A stretch of 63,047 nucleotides of DNA, filler included, from Dicyema japonicum (GCA_011109175.1; 5 parts of 5 records of this genome joined end to end with filler, not necessarily neighbours in it), one strand, 5' to 3'; counted from the first letter of the whole stretch, positions 3,915-13,899 are shown. Numbers and translations: made by a program. Notes: generated from the letters alone by a model not told the origin.

Positions 3915-4714
3915 ATGTGTGAAATTGCAAACAACAGAGAATTTCTACTAACAAAAGTCAGAATATTAAACGTGATTTGCGAATATAAGGAAGTTACAAA
4001 TATCCTACGAGAAGTAATAAGCTCTGACTATTCTCGCTCATTGACTGACGAAGAAGAAAAGATATTTTCAGTGGCTTTCAAGAATCTTCTTGAAACTCAT
4101 CGGTACTCGTACAGAATAGTTACCTCCATTCTACAAAACGAAGAGGATATCGGTGAATTGATGAGTTCTGTGATGAAAGAAATGAGCACAGAGGAGAGAG
4201 ACCACGTGTGCAGAATATGCGATGAAGTAAATGTATGTTGTGGGGTCATGCTTTAGTCTCTCTTGAGACCTTTTCTTGAGAAAGATTCACTTTCTGTTGA
4301 ATTTATCGTTTTCTGTTACAAGACGATGGCCGATTATTTGAGGTACAAAGTCGAGGTCACTGAAGAATGCGATGAGAAGGAAAGTACGATGTCTTGTTAT
4401 TTCCTAGAAATCATAGAAGAGGCATATCAGTATTACTCGAAAGGGTATGACATGTCTGTCAGGTACCTGAGTGCCCTCAATCCACTAAGGTTGGGATTCG
4501 TTCTGAATTTCTCCGTTTTTTACTTCGAAATTAAAGAAATGGCGGAAAAGTCAATAAAAATGGCTGAAGAGGCACTAAAGGAAGCAGAACTAGTCCCCTA
4601 TGAGGAAGATAAGGAATCGACAATTATTTTGAATCTTCTAAACAATAATATTCAGGTAAATCGCAATCCTTAGCATAGAATTGGAAGTTAAGTCTGAAGT
4701 CGCTTGAAATTTAG
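3915..4714 (+). CDS. divergent 14-3-3 family protein (~242 aa), 4 exons
   Basis: Exons 3915-4232, 4257-4383, 4408-4655, 4679-4714; GT-AG introns of 24, 24 and 23 nt. Removing them gives gap-free 14-3-3 motifs: FSVAFKNL, ICDEVNSLL, KTMADYLRY, PLRLGFVLNFSVFYFEI, ESTIILNLLNNNIQNW. The C-terminal end is less certain. Confidence 0.9.
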
Positions 4715-5784: not shown

Positions 5785-6354
5785 GAGCCAAACTCGTCTT
5801 TAAAAATATTATGTGCAGTAAGTGCCTTGAAATTTTTAATGCAAATATGTGACGATAAAAGCAAACTGATTTAAGAAAATCTCACTATATTCGATGTTTT
5901 CCTTAAATTTTAAAAATTTTGAAAAACTATTAAATACTTAAATCAACGTTCATGAAATTTCGAGGCACCATAATTTGCTTAGCTCACAGCCACCTATACT
6001 TTTTTTGTCGGTTGTAACGTCCCTCACTTGTTTTGCATGAAAGATTAGAACTTTTCCCTTAATGCTAAGGGTTTGTGACTGTCAAGAGATCTCACCACAA
6101 ACATGAACATGGAATTACGATATACTAGTCACGTGTCTTCAAAGATTAGACTAAAGATAGATCTCTTTTACTACAAACGGAGTTCAGTCACTGCCCATGG
6201 CTTAGCTGTTCGCACAAATCCAACAAAACATTATAACTGGAGGATCATTGATGAGATCTGTGCTATACAATTATGGATTCAGTAATAGATGACTGTCAAC
6301 GTACACACTTACAATGAGTATCATCTAAAAAGCCACGAAGGCGTCTTTCTATTA

Positions 6355-6600
6355 TACATAACGCTGTTCGCAAACTTAAAAGTATACTTGGATGCTATAC
6401 CATTCTCATTGCTGGAGACTAGAATTCCAAAATTGGCAAGATTAAACGGTAGTAAATGTCCATCGGTTTACATAACGCTGTTCGCAAACTTAAAAGTATA
6501 CTTGGATGCTATACCATTCTCATTGCTGGAGACTAGAATTCCAAAATTGGCTAGATTAAACGGTAGTAAATGTCCATCGGTAGGCATGGCAGAGGAAAGA
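6355..6600 (+). mobile_element. RTE-like endonuclease remnant containing a 114-bp near-perfect tandem duplication
   Basis: TILIAGD*NSKIG...IGRHGRG motif; copies start at 6355 and 6469. Confidence 0.55.
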
Positions 6601-7865
6601 AACACCAACATAATTATGCTCTGTGGAAAATCTATTTCGTGTAATATCTCCTTTATGTACTTGTCAAAACGTCTATGTCATTTTCGAATAAATTAAAAAA
6701 AAATGATTGTTGATTCTCAATCTTTCAGAGGTACCAAGGTATTGAGTGACCACAGACACTCGTTGTCAAGTTTTAACTATATTAGCTTTAGAATTACCAA
6801 TCTCGAACCCTGCTCTCAGCTAGAAATATAGTGAAGAAATCTAGAAACTGATCACGGAACAATCCTTCAATTCTCGACATACACATAGTTAGAAATATCC
6901 ACATATTGGATTCAATGGTATAAGGCAACGACGTTGTCAAAACATATTTAGAATTATTTTATTTATTTAAAAAACAAAAAATAAGTTATAAGAATATAAA
7001 AATTATAAAATAAAATTATTCCAAAGACCAAGGGTAAAACAAACGAACAATTCCTTGATCCTGACTCGATCAAGCAATTCCAGAACTTGACTCCAGGTGG
7101 GACAGATCATAAATTTTTAACCATTAGCCACGTAGCACCAAATGGTTCCTCGCGGATATCCAAATTCTTGTTATAAGAATGAGAATATTTAAAAAAATAA
7201 GTATTGCAAAAATAAAAATTAAAAAAATGAATTAAAATTGTGGTTATTAAAAACAGTTTAAAATCATATCAAGTGCCACCAATAAGTTTTCCTTAAAAAC
7301 AAAAAAACATAAGTAACAGAAATGTAAGAAAGCATCTAATAATTGGAGTGACTAGAACTTCTCCAATGAAGTTAGAGAGAAAGTGATTTTTACTTGTGGT
7401 CAAAACACAAAAAAGTGACATTTTTTATCTTATATATGAAGAACTCAAGTCGCCACTGTAGTTGAATGAGGGAGATTAAGGGACAAAAGAAAAGAAAAAA
7501 AACCTTTAACAAAGTAACAAGTAAGGAAAATTGGCTTTTTAAACACTAACTTATTGAGTTTGTAACAAGGCTCAGTGTAGTATGAGGTTACTCCATGAAC
7601 TTATAGTTTTATATTATAAAAATTAATTAAAAAAAAAAGAAAGCAATTTTTACAAAACAACGTAAGAGCTATTAATTGAAGAAAATTACTTTTTTTAATT
7701 TTAAATTCTTGAGACAGCATAAAACAATCCTGACTTAATGTTAGATGACCACTAATAATTCCGTTCAATGCAAGTTAATTATCAACTATTAAAAATAACT
7801 ATTTCACCGTTTTTTCAAAAATTGAAGTAAACTACATGAAAGATCATATATCTTTGAAAAAATAA

Positions 7866-8701
7866 NNNNNNNNNNNNNNNNNNNNNNNNNNNNNNNNNNN
7901 NNNNNNNNNNNNNNNNNNNNNNNNNNNNNNNNNNNNNNNNNNNNNNNNNNNNNNNNNNNNNNNNNNNNNNNNNNNNNNNNNNNNNNNNNNNNNNNNNNNN
8001 NNNNNNNNNNNNNNNNNNNNNNNNNNNNNNNNNNNNNNNNNNNNNNNNNNNNNNNNNNNNNNNNNNNNNNNNNNNNNNNNNNNNNNNNNNNNNNNNNNNN
8101 NNNNNNNNNNNNNNNNNNNNNNNNNNNNNNNNNNNNNNNNNNNNNNNNNNNNNNNNNNNNNNNNNNNNNNNNNNNNNNNNNNNNNNNNNNNNNNNNNNNN
8201 NNNNNNNNNNNNNNNNNNNNNNNNNNNNNNNNNNNNNNNNNNNNNNNNNNNNNNNNNNNNNNNNNNNNNNNNNNNNNNNNNNNNNNNNNNNNNNNNNNNN
8301 NNNNNNNNNNNNNNNNNNNNNNNNNNNNNNNNNNNNNNNNNNNNNNNNNNNNNNNNNNNNNNNNNNNNNNNNNNNNNNNNNNNNNNNNNNNNNNNNNNNN
8401 NNNNNNNNNNNNNNNNNNNNNNNNNNNNNNNNNNNNNNNNNNNNNNNNNNNNNNNNNNNNNNNNNNNNNNNNNNNNNNNNNNNNNNNNNNNNNNNNNNNN
8501 NNNNNNNNNNNNNNNNNNNNNNNNNNNNNNNNNNNNNNNNNNNNNNNNNNNNNNNNNNNNNNNNNNNNNNNNNNNNNNNNNNNNNNNNNNNNNNNNNNNN
8601 NNNNNNNNNNNNNNNNNNNNNNNNNNNNNNNNNNNNNNNNNNNNNNNNNNNNNNNNNNNNNNNNNNNNNNNNNNNNNNNNNNNNNNNNNNNNNNNNNNNN
8701 N
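7866..8701. other. assembly gap (N run)
   Basis: 836 N. Confidence 1.
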
Positions 8702-9600
8702 AACTACATCTTCGCTACGCAGGAGTCGGAATACGCTCGCAACTAGAACTCGCCTTTCCGGTTTTCCTTTTTTCGACATATGCTTCCAGTGGTCTCACAC
8801 TCCAGATCCTACACTACATTTACGGATCGGACGCTGAACCAGTTGTGTGCATGGCTCAGGATTTCTTAACGCGCTGGGTGTTGGATTCCCAAAGATCGCT
8901 AATAAACAACGAGAATGAGACAAGCTTTTGTGCTCAAAGATCACCGAAGAAATAAAACCTGTGTCTGATCAGCATCGTTTTGCTTGTCTGGCTTCTGAAT
9001 CAACGAATGAGATTGTACCTCACTTGGGACACTATTGGATTACGACGCGACGAGTATAGGGGTTCAGTCCGACTCGGAATGGATGTTTGCACAATTCATC
9101 GGTGTAGATGTGAAAGAATGGTCGACGTGATTGGTCTTCACGCTTTCTTTTGCCAGAGGAGTGCTGGAAGGAGTCCTAGACAAGCCGCAATCAACAAGGT
9201 TATTCTTGTGGACTTGAGGCTGCCGTATATCCTGTCCAATTGGAGGTGCTTGGACTTGCTCAAGCCAACCGAAGTCCGGACGGAACCAATCTCTTCCCAT
9301 TGGAGAGTGGTAAAAACCTTGCCGGGACGCCACCTGTGTCGATAGCCTTTCTATTTCCAATCCTCAAGGACAGCAACTGAACCAGGCTCAGCTTCAGAGA
9401 AGGCTGAGACCCTAAAGATAAAAAATACACATGTCTTGGAAGACAATTTATCTTCGAACCAGTAGCAGTTGAAACAACAGGCATAATTAGAAGAAGGTAA
9501 CTGACGCTGCTAAACAGGATCGGCTAGCTTATTGCGAAGAAGAAAAACGATAGGAGTGAAAGGAGCTGGCTCATTGAGCGGATTTATTTTCATTATATTT
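8702..9600 (+). mobile_element. decayed 3' ~0.9 kb of CRE-type retrotransposon
   Basis: LHLRYAGVGIRSQLELA, HRCRCERMVDVIGLH (zinc knuckle) and FIFEPVAVETTG; collinear with the copy at 22857-25888. Confidence 0.85.
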
Positions 9601-10430
9601 TCTTTGCTATATTCAATCGTCCCATAAAATATTTAATTAAACACTTTACATGAAGTCCTAATTTTTTATAATTTTTTTCTAAAGCACTATAGTTGAATAC
9701 ATTGTTCTGACCTAGGCAATTTAGGATAATCCCCAAGGGTTCTTAGTAATCAAATTAATTGTCTAAAATTTAGAATAAGGATTTTTTGGTTTTCATACAT
9801 TTGTGAACGCAATATGAATATTTAACCCATTTTTTAATTTTTTATTAAAAAGTGCAATTTATATTTTCTATGCTATATTCAATCGTCTTATAAAATATTT
9901 AATTAAACACTTTACATGAAGTCCTAATTTATTATAATTTTTTTTCTAAAGCACTATACTTGAATATATTGTTATGACCTAGGCAATTTACAGAAGTCCC
10001 GAAGGGTTCTTTGTAACCAAATTAATTGTCTAAATTTAGAATAAGGATTTTTTGGTTTTCATACATTTGTGAACGCAATATGAATATTTAACCTATTTTT
10101 TAATTTTTTATTAAAAAGTGCAATTTATATTTTCTATATTAAACTATCTTTCATTAAATAATTTTATTTGTAACTGTATATGACGTCTTTATTTTATATA
10201 ATTAATTTTCTGTCCAATGTACTTTTACTTGCACAAATTAAACAGACTAAGGCTAACATCAAGAAGTGTTTTTATTAGCAAAATCCTAGCGTTTCTTATT
10301 TTGATTAAAGAATAGATTTTTTAATTTTCATACATTTGTGAACTCAATATGAATATTTAACCTATTTTTTAATTTTTTATTAAAAGAAGTCTCATTTATT
10401 TTTTCTATAATATAACCATCTTCCTATAAA
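9597..10430. repeat. AT-rich tandem repeat, ~267-bp unit, about 3 diverged copies
   Basis: gctatattcaatcgtc at 9606 and 9872; ttttcatacatttgtgaac at ~9790, ~10056 and ~10325. Confidence 0.85.
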
Positions 10431-11297
10431 TAATTTTATTTGAGATGGATATAACGTTTTAATTTTTTTATTTTCATTTAATTGGTACATTCTTACTACT
10501 AGAAGATCTAAACAATATATCTTAATAAATTATTACTAAGAAATAATGAAATTAGAAATCCGACATTGATAGCCAACAAAATATCTACGATAAATAAATT
10601 TTTCAACAAAAAATAATTATAAAAAATATAAAAATAAAAGAAATTCCATTTGAGTCAATGTAATTAATTACATTAAATTTTTTAACGTTTGTGATAGAAA
10701 AATAAAATAAAATAATTCTACAAAGTTTGATAATATCAAAAAAATTCGTGAAAATTATGCTAAGGAGTATGGAAAAGATATGATTTTAAAAAGCTAATGA
10801 AATTATATAGAAAAATCTGATTTGATTTGTTCAAAATGCGTAAAGGATTTTTCTTTCATCAAATGATAAATAAGCTTGTTGACTCGACATTACTGGAATT
10901 TCAAAAAACTTAGTGACTAAGAAAAATTATCTATAATACTATTATTAGATATAACTCAGTATTTTAAACAATTTATTTAATAAGAAATGTAGAACATAGA
11001 AATCGAACAAAGATATCTAAAAAATGTCTTACAATAAATAATTAATTTCAACATAAAATTATAATCAAAAACAATTGAAAAATAAAAGAAAAAAAATTTC
11101 ACGTCAAATTAAAGCAAACTAACCAAATTAGTTGTTCAAAGAATTTTGATAAAAAAGAAAAATAAAATAAATCTATAAAGTTTGAATATATCAAATAAAA
11201 AAAAGTAAGATAAAAAGAATTGATGTCTAGAAAATAATCATTAATTTTATGATGTAAATAAAGAAACCATTTTATTACCCACCAAAGAACCAATGAA

Positions 11298-12619
11298 TCA
11301 AACTAATTAATATTATCGATCGATACACCTTCTGTCTTTAATGTAGTAGTAGAGGCTAGAGCTATGATTAGTAATGAAACCTGCTGTTGTCGACGGAGTA
11401 GTTGAAGCTATGAAAGTAACAAGTCACTATACCATTAGTCAATTGAGTGGTAGAAGCTAACGTTAATGATAAGTCATTATACCTGCATTCGTCGACGGAG
11501 TAGTAGAAGCTAGGAAAGTAACAAGTCACTATACCATTAGTCAATTGAGTGGTAGAAGCTAACGTTAATGATAAGTCATTATACCTGCATTCGTCGACGG
11601 AGTAGTAGAAGCTAGGAAAGTAACAAGTCACTATACCATTAGTCAATTGAGTGGTAGAAGCTAACGTTAATGATAAGTCATTATACCTGCATTCGTCGAC
11701 GGAGTAGTAGAAGCTAGGAAAGTAACAAGTCACTATACCATTAGTCAATTGAGTGGTAGAAGCTAACGTTAATGAGAAGCTAGGAAAGTAACAAGTCACT
11801 ATACCATTAGTCAATTGAGTGGTAGAAGCTAACGTTAATGATAAGTCATTATACCTGCATTCGTCGACGGAGTAGTAGAAGCTATGAAAGTAACAAGTCA
11901 CTATACCATTAGTCAATTGAGTGGTAGAAGCTAACGTTAATGATAAGTCATCATACATGTTGTCGTCGACGGAGTAGTAGAAGCTAAAGAAATGACTAGT
12001 CATCATACATTCAGCAAATGGAAAAATAAAAGCTGAGGTTTATGAAAAATCATTATACCTCTTAGTGTCGATTGAGTAGTAGAAGCTAGGGAAATGAACA
12101 GTCATTAAACCATTAGTAAATAGAGTGGTAGAAGCTACGTTAATAAACAGTCACTATACCTGCAGTCATCGACGGAGTAGTAGAATCTAGAGAATTGACT
12201 AGTCATTATACCTGTTGTCGTCGACTGAGTAATAGAAGCTAGGGAAATGACTATTCATCATACCTGTTGTCGTCGACTGAGTAGTAGAAGCTAGGGAAAT
12301 GACTATTCATTATACCTGTTGTCGTCGACTGAGTAGTAGATGCTAGGGAAATGACTAGTCATTATACCTGTTGTCGTCGACGGAGTAGTAGAATCTAGGG
12401 AAGTGACTAGTCATCATACTTGTTGTCGTCGACGGAGTAGTAGAATCTAGAGAATTGACTAGTCATTATACCTTCAATAAATGAAGTAGTATCTTCATTT
12501 TCTAACAATTAAAATTTACATTAATACCTTCTCCTGAACTTAATCCAATCTCTATTAATCAAAATTTACAATTTACTGGAAAATATATTGAAGAATAACA
12601 AAAGACTGACTAATATCAT
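11298..12619 (-). CDS. secreted Ser/Thr-rich mucin-like protein (~223 aa) encoded by 26 micro-exons
   Basis: ATG at 12619; signal-peptide-like MILVSLLLFFNIFSKIGLSS, then acidic GEENED. 24 internal exons of 24/27/30 nt, all phase 1-1. 25 GT-AG introns: 16 of 25 nt, 8 of 26 nt, one of 42 nt. Spliced CDS is 672 nt with repeats ASTTPSTTT, ASTTQLTN and ASTTPSTNA, ending TTLKTEV*. Confidence 0.85.
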
Positions 12620-13899
12620 TCAACATTTCCGTCTGTGTTCGATTATAAATATTCATCAAAGAATTTGACCTTATTTATTGTGAGTCCGAATGAATTCCAT
12701 ACACATAAAGGGATATTTGCTTATATCTTGATTTAATTTCTTTCTCTTACTAATCTCACTTCACGTAATGAAAACGTTCTTTTTTATCTCTGATGACATC
12801 AAAAAAATCTTTGTTTAAGGAGAAAATAACAATCAAAACTAACTTCACAGTCATATTTGTTCACAAAAGAGACTCCTGACAAACACCACAGATTTTAACA
12901 TTACCCTATAAGACGTCCGAATTATACTTGTAAAAAACTCGTTACTTTTATTAAGAGGATATCCCTGGGGACTTGGAATTAAATTTTTATTTTATTACAT
13001 CAAATATATATGAACGAAATTTATTTAAGTTTGGAATTTCATATATATACACAGATTGACTTTTTCTATTTTTTTGTTAGATTTGTAAAGTACATCACTG
13101 GATAACTCTCTGGGTACTCTTTGAATTATTTAAACTCAAGCCAATTATTAATTTGAAACTTTTTTATATGATATTTGGAGTATTAACCAAATTTTTGAAA
13201 TATCTTAATAATTTCAAGAATCATTTATATTATGAATGTGCTATTTATGGATTTGATCTTTTATAGACATATGAATTCGTCATCTGCTTTCAATTGGCAC
13301 AAAAATGAGTAACTAAAAGCTATTAATTGTTTTTTTAAACTCAAACGATTGAATAATCAATCAGTATAATTTATCTTATTTGTTATTTCCAATTGCTCAT
13401 CAGTGTAAGCTCACAGTCGCCTTCGATTACTTGGATCCACTTATTCTTATGGTGACTTCATTGAACTATAATTTGGGACTATGAATGCCCCTGGCTGACT
13501 GGTGGAACTTAATAAAACCTATTATGCGTAACTCTGGAGTTATTCAAAACTATGAGAAACCTAAAAAGTATTCAGTACGGCGATTTTTGTCATTAAGTAA
13601 AAAATTCATATGTTCTTTAAATTTGTTTGAAACTTGCACTAACAATTTAATAACATTCGCAATTTCGTGTTAGTTAACAAATTCTTTTTATATAAAATAT
13701 AGCTTACATATTTTTTTCCACTACCAACTCGACAGATCACGATATTATTCAACAGGACATCTCAAATGTAATTCTTAATCAAAAATATTATTTAAATCAA
13801 TAGTTATAAAATCAAAAAATCAAAATTAGAATTAGGACAATTATGTAAAATAATTTATTGATTTTATTATTGATTTTATTGAGTTTTTGTAAAGATACT

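Follow-up and report, generated by a model that had tools for sequence, protein, structure and literature searches.

A candidate minus-strand gene for a secreted mucin-like protein built of exon-plus-intron repeats

Classical mucin VNTRs consist of a signal peptide and tandem Ser/Thr(/Pro) modules that lie within a single large exon. In the SmPoMuc mucins of Schistosoma mansoni, repeats of 9 amino acids are each encoded by one 27-bp exon, and exon plus intron are arranged in tandem in up to about 20 copies (PMC2576457). The micro-exon genes (MEGs) of schistosomes form a family that has been described as specific to Schistosomatidae (bioRxiv 10.1101/2023.06.21.545858). Among animals, a median intron length below 30 nt is found only in myxobolid myxozoans and Dicyema japonicum, and the donor site is reduced to 'GTa' (PMC13644364). 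The D. japonicum genome, sequenced from one paired-end and four mate-pair libraries, contains 5,012 genes in 67.5 Mb with 4.1% gaps; its GC content is 36.7% and its introns average 38 nt (PMC6736024). In a second dicyemid, the median intron length is 27 nt (PMC6543705).

Here we analysed a window of D. japonicum DNA, meaning the whole stretch of 63,047 nucleotides, filler included. Judging from the sequence, a locus on the minus strand of this window is likely to be a spliced gene encoding a secreted mucin-like protein built of exon-plus-intron repeats. The coding sequence, rebuilt by script on positions 11100-12800, runs from an ATG at 12619 to a TGA at 11300-11298 and comprises 26 exons. The 24 internal exons measure 24 nt (nine exons), 27 nt (14 exons) or 30 nt (one exon), and every one of them is entered and left in phase 1. 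GT..AG ends were found in 25 of the 25 introns, which are 25 nt (16 introns), 26 nt (eight introns) or 42 nt (one intron) long; 22 of the 25 start with GTA and 24 finish with TAG. Exons of 30 nt or less, 24 in number, hold 624 of the 672 coding nucleotides (93%), and the last exon contributes two coding bases and the stop codon TGA. The spliced ORF encodes 223 amino acids and contains no internal stop. Transcription and splicing are what we infer from this anatomy and from the statistics given below.

The coding part of exon 1 (12577..12619, minus strand, 43 nt) encodes MILVSLLLFFNIFS, a signal-peptide-like segment and the sole hydrophobic stretch of the protein. It is followed by a non-repeated 5' part (12472..12576, minus strand) that encodes the acidic linker KIGLSSGEENEDTTSFIE along a single in-phase path, through intron 1 (12576-12552, 25 nt), exon 2 (12551-12528, 24 nt), intron 2 (12527-12502, 26 nt) and exon 3 (12501-12472, 30 nt). 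At the other end, the 3' part of the CDS (11298..11355, minus strand) contains exon 25 (11355-11329) and intron 25 (11328-11303), the latter 26 nt long and not derived from the repeat. A candidate polyadenylation signal, AATAAA, lies on the same strand at 11271..11276, 22 nt 3' of the stop codon. Upstream, a motif scan detected the TATA-like motif TATTTATAAT (12642..12651, minus strand) about 30 nt from the ATG, which may represent the core promoter. An upstream ATG (12624..12626, minus strand) stands 7 nt 5' of the proposed start, out of frame with it, and its frame stops after splicing; whether it is present in the transcript depends on the transcription start site. A first-pass annotation had described 26 exons, internal exons of 24, 27 or 30 nt, phase 1-1 throughout and one odd intron. 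The rebuilt model reproduced all of these features, and the interval given there, 11298-12619, is bounded exactly by the start and stop codons. The proposal that the duplicated unit is an exon plus an intron held as well, since each internal repeat exon has its own intron and TRF returned periods of 52 and 102.

The predicted protein starts with the hydrophobic segment, continues with the acidic linker and about 22 Ser/Thr modules of 8-9 amino acids each, and ends with TLKTEV. These six residues directly follow the array, and there is no C-terminal domain. The modules take the forms (A/D/N/S)STTPSTTT, ASTTQSTTT, ASTTQLTN and ASTTPSTNA, and a single hydrophobic module, AFIFPFAE, is encoded by the 24-nt exon 12032-12009; ASTTPSTTT and the other forms named in the first-pass annotation (ASTTQSTTT, ASTTQLTN, ASTTPSTNA and AFIFPFAE) were all recovered in the spliced ORF. 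Threonine makes up 35% of the residues, serine 18% and proline 4.5%, and serine and threonine together amount to 56% of the mature part. Cysteine is absent, as are a second hydrophobic segment and any transmembrane or GPI-like tail. The only hydrophobic window covers residues 1-16, with Kyte-Doolittle values of 2.1-2.7 in windows starting at residues 1-4; residues 2-13 are hydrophobic, and small residues occupy positions -1 and -3 of a possible cleavage site after S14. The signal-peptide call is based on a hydropathy heuristic. A signal-like start followed by Ser/Thr(/Pro) tandem repeats is the combination expected of a mucin-like protein, and from this composition we infer that the product is probably secreted and heavily O-glycosylated. 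Differences between modules are mostly non-synonymous (34 versus 11 synonymous) and show no third-position bias, so that there is no signal of purifying selection on individual residues. This fits a repeat domain that is selected for its composition and not for its exact sequence.

The repeats fall into two parts of apparently different age. TRF reported a 52-bp array at 11389-12473 and a 102-bp array at 11364-11779 whose copies are 96% identical, together with periods of 168 (a 98% duplication) and 66. The older array (11957..12471, minus strand), with a period of 49-53 bp, comprises introns 3-12 and exons 4-13; its exons are 27 nt long apart from two of 24 nt, and its units are about 71-85% alike. 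The young higher-order array (11356..11956, minus strand) comprises introns 13-24 and exons 14-24, and its copies are 96-98% identical. Its 102-bp unit consists of a 27-nt exon with a 26-nt intron plus a 24-nt exon with a 25-nt intron. Each period brings its own intron, so 3n length is required of the exon only and not of the DNA period of such an array. As a 52-bp period is not divisible by three, the intron must have been part of the unit by the time duplication began. The symmetry of all exons follows from the same constraint, because only exons of 3n length make the duplication of exon plus intron tolerable.

The pattern of an older, more diverged half and a young, nearly identical half indicates that growth of the array is ongoing, which would proceed via unequal exchange or slippage. 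In the history that we propose, 52-bp exon-plus-intron units would have multiplied first, and a two-unit higher-order repeat of 102 bp would have arisen recently. After transcription, removal of the short GTA...TAG introns would yield an mRNA for a precursor of 223 amino acids, or of 148 amino acids if the usual acceptor is used in intron 16. In this precursor, a signal peptide at the N-terminus would be followed by a short acidic linker and then by about 22 modules rich in Ser/Thr, and its variation would arise mostly at the DNA level, in module number and point changes, and not by programmed exon skipping. A short palindrome, ATGACTAGTCAT, was also observed right after the donor in many array introns, at 12343-12471 and elsewhere, with the variants ATGA-CTTA-TCAT and GTGAC-TT-GTTAC. 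Its loop is shorter than a normal RNA hairpin allows; the palindrome might affect DNA slippage or be a relic.

Reads containing the locus came from the 2019 runs of one sample, made up of a very large library and several small ones, and word depth was in the thousands. Because any 31-mer within the array crosses an exon-intron boundary, the 31-mer index finds the unspliced form only. In the four runs with the unspliced locus, no 25-nt skip joints were found and the flanks were as deep as the gene, so these runs behave as DNA. Contigs of the source sample, 90-99% alike, extend over the gene and its flanking sequence. Between 10900 and 13100, the four runs (X1-X4) contain at least two sequence versions, flanks included, which are 90-95% and 99-100% alike and of comparable depth; they represent either recent paralogues or, in a pooled population, divergent haplotypes. 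A total of 15 substitutions were listed in the gene, five in introns and ten in exons (nine non-synonymous, one synonymous), and none of these introduces a stop codon or alters a GT or AG. The four one-base indels in the gene all lie in introns (p ~0.06). A contig of 1327 nt joins position ~11953 to 11302 and then continues into diverged flanks, which suggests a shorter allele or paralogue. All of this contig variation is suggestive only, given cross-placement between units and mis-joins in 31-mer assemblies. Joints internal to the array were considered as copy-number alleles and set aside, since contigs built from 31-mers mis-join repeats.

The one exceptional intron is intron 16 (11763..11804, minus strand, 42 nt), which is composed of an ordinary, complete 25-nt intron (11804-11780) and a 17-nt remnant (11779-11763), a point that the first-pass annotation had passed over. 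Its first 25 nt are a letter-for-letter copy of three other array introns, and the remnant, CTTCT followed by CATTAACGTTAG, stems from a 27-nt exon with its 26-nt intron, from which a 36-bp deletion removed most of the exon and the donor of the intron. Use of the proximal AG (11781-11780) would lead to Ala-Ser-His-TAA and a product of 148 amino acids, and use of the distal AG would give the 223 amino acids of the full model. The premature TAA is the likelier outcome at this intron, because its first 25 nt match introns used elsewhere. This copy may therefore encode a shorter mucin, be a target of NMD, or reflect an assembly collapse in a repeat whose copies are 96-98% identical.

The array could accordingly have been a spliced gene once and now be a decaying or truncated copy, disabled by the 36-bp deletion, that is, a pseudogene or NMD target. 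The deletion did take a donor site, and the intron whose proximal acceptor leads to the TAA has three identical counterparts. The sample also contains contigs of a shorter, diverged copy, and read depth over 11714-11787 is below that of the neighbouring bins, a difference that is not decisive. However, everything else is intact, with 25 of 25 splice sites and no other stop, and an intron of 42 nt is within the published range for such genomes, where the mean is 38 nt. A product of 148 amino acids would still be secreted and mucin-like, and the deletion itself is possibly an assembly collapse in the near-identical repeat. We consider a disabled copy unlikely.

Alternatively, the gene could be real and serve diversification as in MEGs, with combinatorial skipping of its symmetric micro-exons giving rise to numerous secreted variants. 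Since the 24 internal exons are all in phase 1-1, any subset could be removed in frame; exons of 30 nt or less make up 93% of the CDS, behind a signal-like start; and schistosome MEGs and SmPoMuc show that parasites exploit such genes for variation. The first-pass annotation had taken exon symmetry as a hallmark of MEGs and of skipping. Symmetry is, however, expected without skipping, being a precondition for tolerated duplication of exon plus intron, and this argument did not hold. For very short introns, splice-site recognition is generally held to occur across the intron. Skipping one exon would require the removal of a 77-nt intron, against a local norm of 25-30 nt. Moreover, as the modules are nearly identical, skipping would mainly change the length of the protein, which a change in DNA copy number does likewise. 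Combinatorial skipping is for these reasons improbable. Of the annotation's overall reading, the spliced, secreted, Ser/Thr-rich gene is supported by the sequence statistics, whereas the MEG-like diversification is not; membership of the MEG family itself fails on intron length and tandem exons.

We then evaluated whether the spliced gene model exceeds what a repeat would produce by chance. A minisatellite of non-genic nature might happen to have GT and AG 25 nt apart in its unit, in which case the spliced ORF would be an artefact. A random 52-nt unit often has some GT..AG pair, and shifted registers are often open once 25-26 nt per unit are removed. An open frame alone is weak evidence, since many shifted splice registers leave two stops or fewer, and a dynamic programme for the longest spliced ORF was non-discriminating: it returned 338-391 codons via partial intron retention, and 122-266 codons on the plus strand. 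Decisive among the registers is the one with GT-AG ends, which has them at all 25 boundaries; in the 52 shifted registers, none of the 25 boundaries has GT-AG. Among 16 distinct exon-plus-intron units, 12 of 53 columns are invariant and 41 vary; the GT and AG account for four of the invariant columns, and the probability that all splice columns are invariant is about 0.002 in this alignment (hypergeometric test). In the same alignment, the exon part contains a single indel, of 3 nt, and the intron part a single indel, of 1 nt. A non-genic origin leaves both the invariance of the GT/AG columns and this 3-nt versus 1-nt pattern unexplained.

The flanks of the array lead to the same conclusion. 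Introns 1, 2 and 25 are no copies of the repeat and yet measure 25, 26 and 26 nt with GT..TAG ends; three unrelated introns of the same size at the flanks have no explanation if the array is non-genic. In the non-repeated 5' part there is exactly one path from an ATG into the frame of the array. Dinucleotide-preserving shuffles gave any in-phase 5' path in 5% of cases and one with an equally hydrophobic start in 0.1% (p ~0.001), and neither this unique path nor the stop followed by AATAAA right past the array would be expected of a mere minisatellite. GC content is 42% in exons and 31% in introns. Candidate GTA..TAG introns of 24-30 nt number 22 in 2 kb here, versus ~1.5 per kb elsewhere, and they are enriched here only. 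A search with the unspliced ORF of 223 amino acids found no homologue at E≤10 among 8000 candidates, in line with a non-genic origin; an annotated spliced product did not emerge from this search either. On balance, a chance or purely non-genic origin is unlikely, and the bare minisatellite in particular is very hard to reconcile with the splice register.

In the unspliced sequence there are stops in all frames, save for a frame of 223 codons (11371-12039) within the 102-bp half of the array, which is open because an intron pair of 25 and 26 nt adds up to 51 nt. Gene finders would report just this unspliced frame of such an array. That the frame encodes an intronless protein with 34-aa repeats is barely conceivable: it is open, as such a protein would require, but it is confined to the 102-bp half while the 52-bp half has stops in all frames, it shows neither a signal peptide nor any other feature that can be recognised, a search at E≤10 gave no homologue, and a 34-codon unit would be open by chance in about 10-20% of cases, as estimated from base composition. 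No exact products of three window ORFs are on record in public gene calls, and Rfam and tRNA scans of the window gave no matches.

The genomic context was analysed for further genes. A Pfam search on 16 ORFs of the window gave a single match, a divergent 14-3-3 gene (3915..4673, plus strand; 42.7 and 91.8 bits over two ORFs), which is the only other recognisable gene in a window of low gene content. Its intron (4227-4256) is 30 nt long with GT..AG ends, has a 3n length and ends in an in-frame TAG. For the 14-3-3 exon, a full HMMER search among 1.84 billion representatives gave a best match of 41% identity, and the two best organism-named matches were from amphioxus and scallop; a word-indexed search with this exon gave no match. 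These matches lend weak support to a fast-evolving metazoan, and none is a close relative. Neither the 14-3-3 CDS (~245 codons) nor the mucin CDS (223 codons) has an in-frame TAA or TAG. This absence, together with the 30-nt intron of the 14-3-3 gene, argues for the standard code and tiny introns in this genome. A ciliate code of the Paramecium type was considered and ruled out, as there is no in-frame TAA or TAG and the break in the 14-3-3 gene is a GT..AG intron.

GC content in the window is ~30-37% outside a scaffold gap (7866-8701) and an AT-rich stretch (9500-11500). Beside this N gap, the region 8956-9523 has a higher GC content (~37%) and overlapping ORFs on both strands, with no Pfam match. 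One of these ORFs contains a Cys/His-rich stretch, …CTIHRCRCERMVDVIGLHAFFCQRSAGRSPRQ…, which is reminiscent of retrotransposon ORF tails; the region is possibly a transposable-element remnant at the scaffold gap. Downstream from the mucin gene, at 9593-10137, a 266-bp unit is present twice (93% identity) in a very AT-rich stretch with a GC content of 20-24%. Another duplication, a tandem one of 114 bp (3n) with 99% identity, was found at 6355-6581 inside an ORF of 135 codons (6289-6693), for which there was no Pfam match and no exact product on record.

If transcripts confirm the spliced mucin gene, it would represent an extreme architecture, with 25 introns within 1.3 kb, exons as short as introns and a non-3n period of 52 bp rescued by splicing. 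The assembly of spliceosomes on introns that lie 24-27 nt apart would be a stress test for splicing. It would also show that, in genomes with tiny introns, a minisatellite can carry whole exon-intron units, and one slippage event would then create a new intron and a new module at once, which would be a simple way to gain introns and to evolve secreted proteins rapidly. With respect to parasite biology, the product would be a candidate for a mucin at the host interface, in a lineage with poor annotation. By analogy with schistosomes, a dicyemid or another parasite with tiny introns might also have convergently evolved a system of variable glycoproteins that combines copy-number change with in-frame skipping, which we regard as improbable. 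Were it true, rapid copy-number change in the germline or soma would vary a surface or secreted glycoprotein, and with 25 spliceosomal introns in 1.3 kb the gene would have the densest run known.

We finally compared the locus with the systems described so far. Its predicted introns resemble the ultra-short introns of dicyemids and myxobolids, which have a median of 22-27 nt, a 'GTa' donor and an AG acceptor (PMC13644364, PMC6543705, PMC6736024); of the introns found here, all 25 have GT..AG ends, 24 are 25-26 nt long and 22 have a GTA donor. Genes in those reports have 5-6 introns each and exons that average ~200 nt, in contrast with the 24 micro-exons of this gene. In the literature covered, which was incomplete, we found no description of 24 successive exons of at most 30 nt in tiny-intron genomes. 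The locus shares with classical mucin VNTRs a minisatellite-like coding array prone to copy-number change. It differs from them in that their repeat lies in one exon and its period must be a multiple of three, whereas here the period is 49-53 bp and each copy has its own intron.

MEGs have symmetric 3n micro-exons of 3-81 nt between signal-peptide and terminal exons and encode secreted proteins (bioRxiv 10.1101/2023.06.21.545858), and here too most of the CDS is in symmetric 3n micro-exons. However, MEG introns measure 0.1-5 kb, compared with 25-26 nt plus one of 42 nt in this gene; the micro-exons of MEGs are not tandem copies of each other; and their proteins contain no mucin-like repeats. 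Variation by exon skipping is documented for MEGs, whereas in the present gene it would be hypothetical. Membership of the MEG family fails on these points, and what would be left is an analogy of function.

SmPoMuc proteins are secreted, Ser/Thr-rich and composed of homogenised repeats, and their genomic unit is an exon with its flanking intron (PMC2576457), as in the locus described here. The 27-bp exon encoding a 9-aa repeat and the tandem exon-plus-intron unit are both found at this locus, where 14 exons are 27 nt and nine are 24 nt long. The SmPoMuc unit differs in its size of ~1 kb with microsatellite spacers, against 52 bp here, and SmPoMuc has a conserved C-terminal domain (13 further exons, 3-15), whereas this protein ends six residues past the array. 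SmPoMuc is also a multigene family; the possible counterparts here are the contigs 90-95% alike over the flanks and the shorter contig of 1327 nt, although joints inside the array could be de Bruijn artefacts. Variation in SmPoMuc arises largely at the DNA level, through repeat number and recombination. Compared by architecture, SmPoMuc is a nearer analogue of this gene than the MEGs, and because the lineages differ, the resemblance is presumably convergent.
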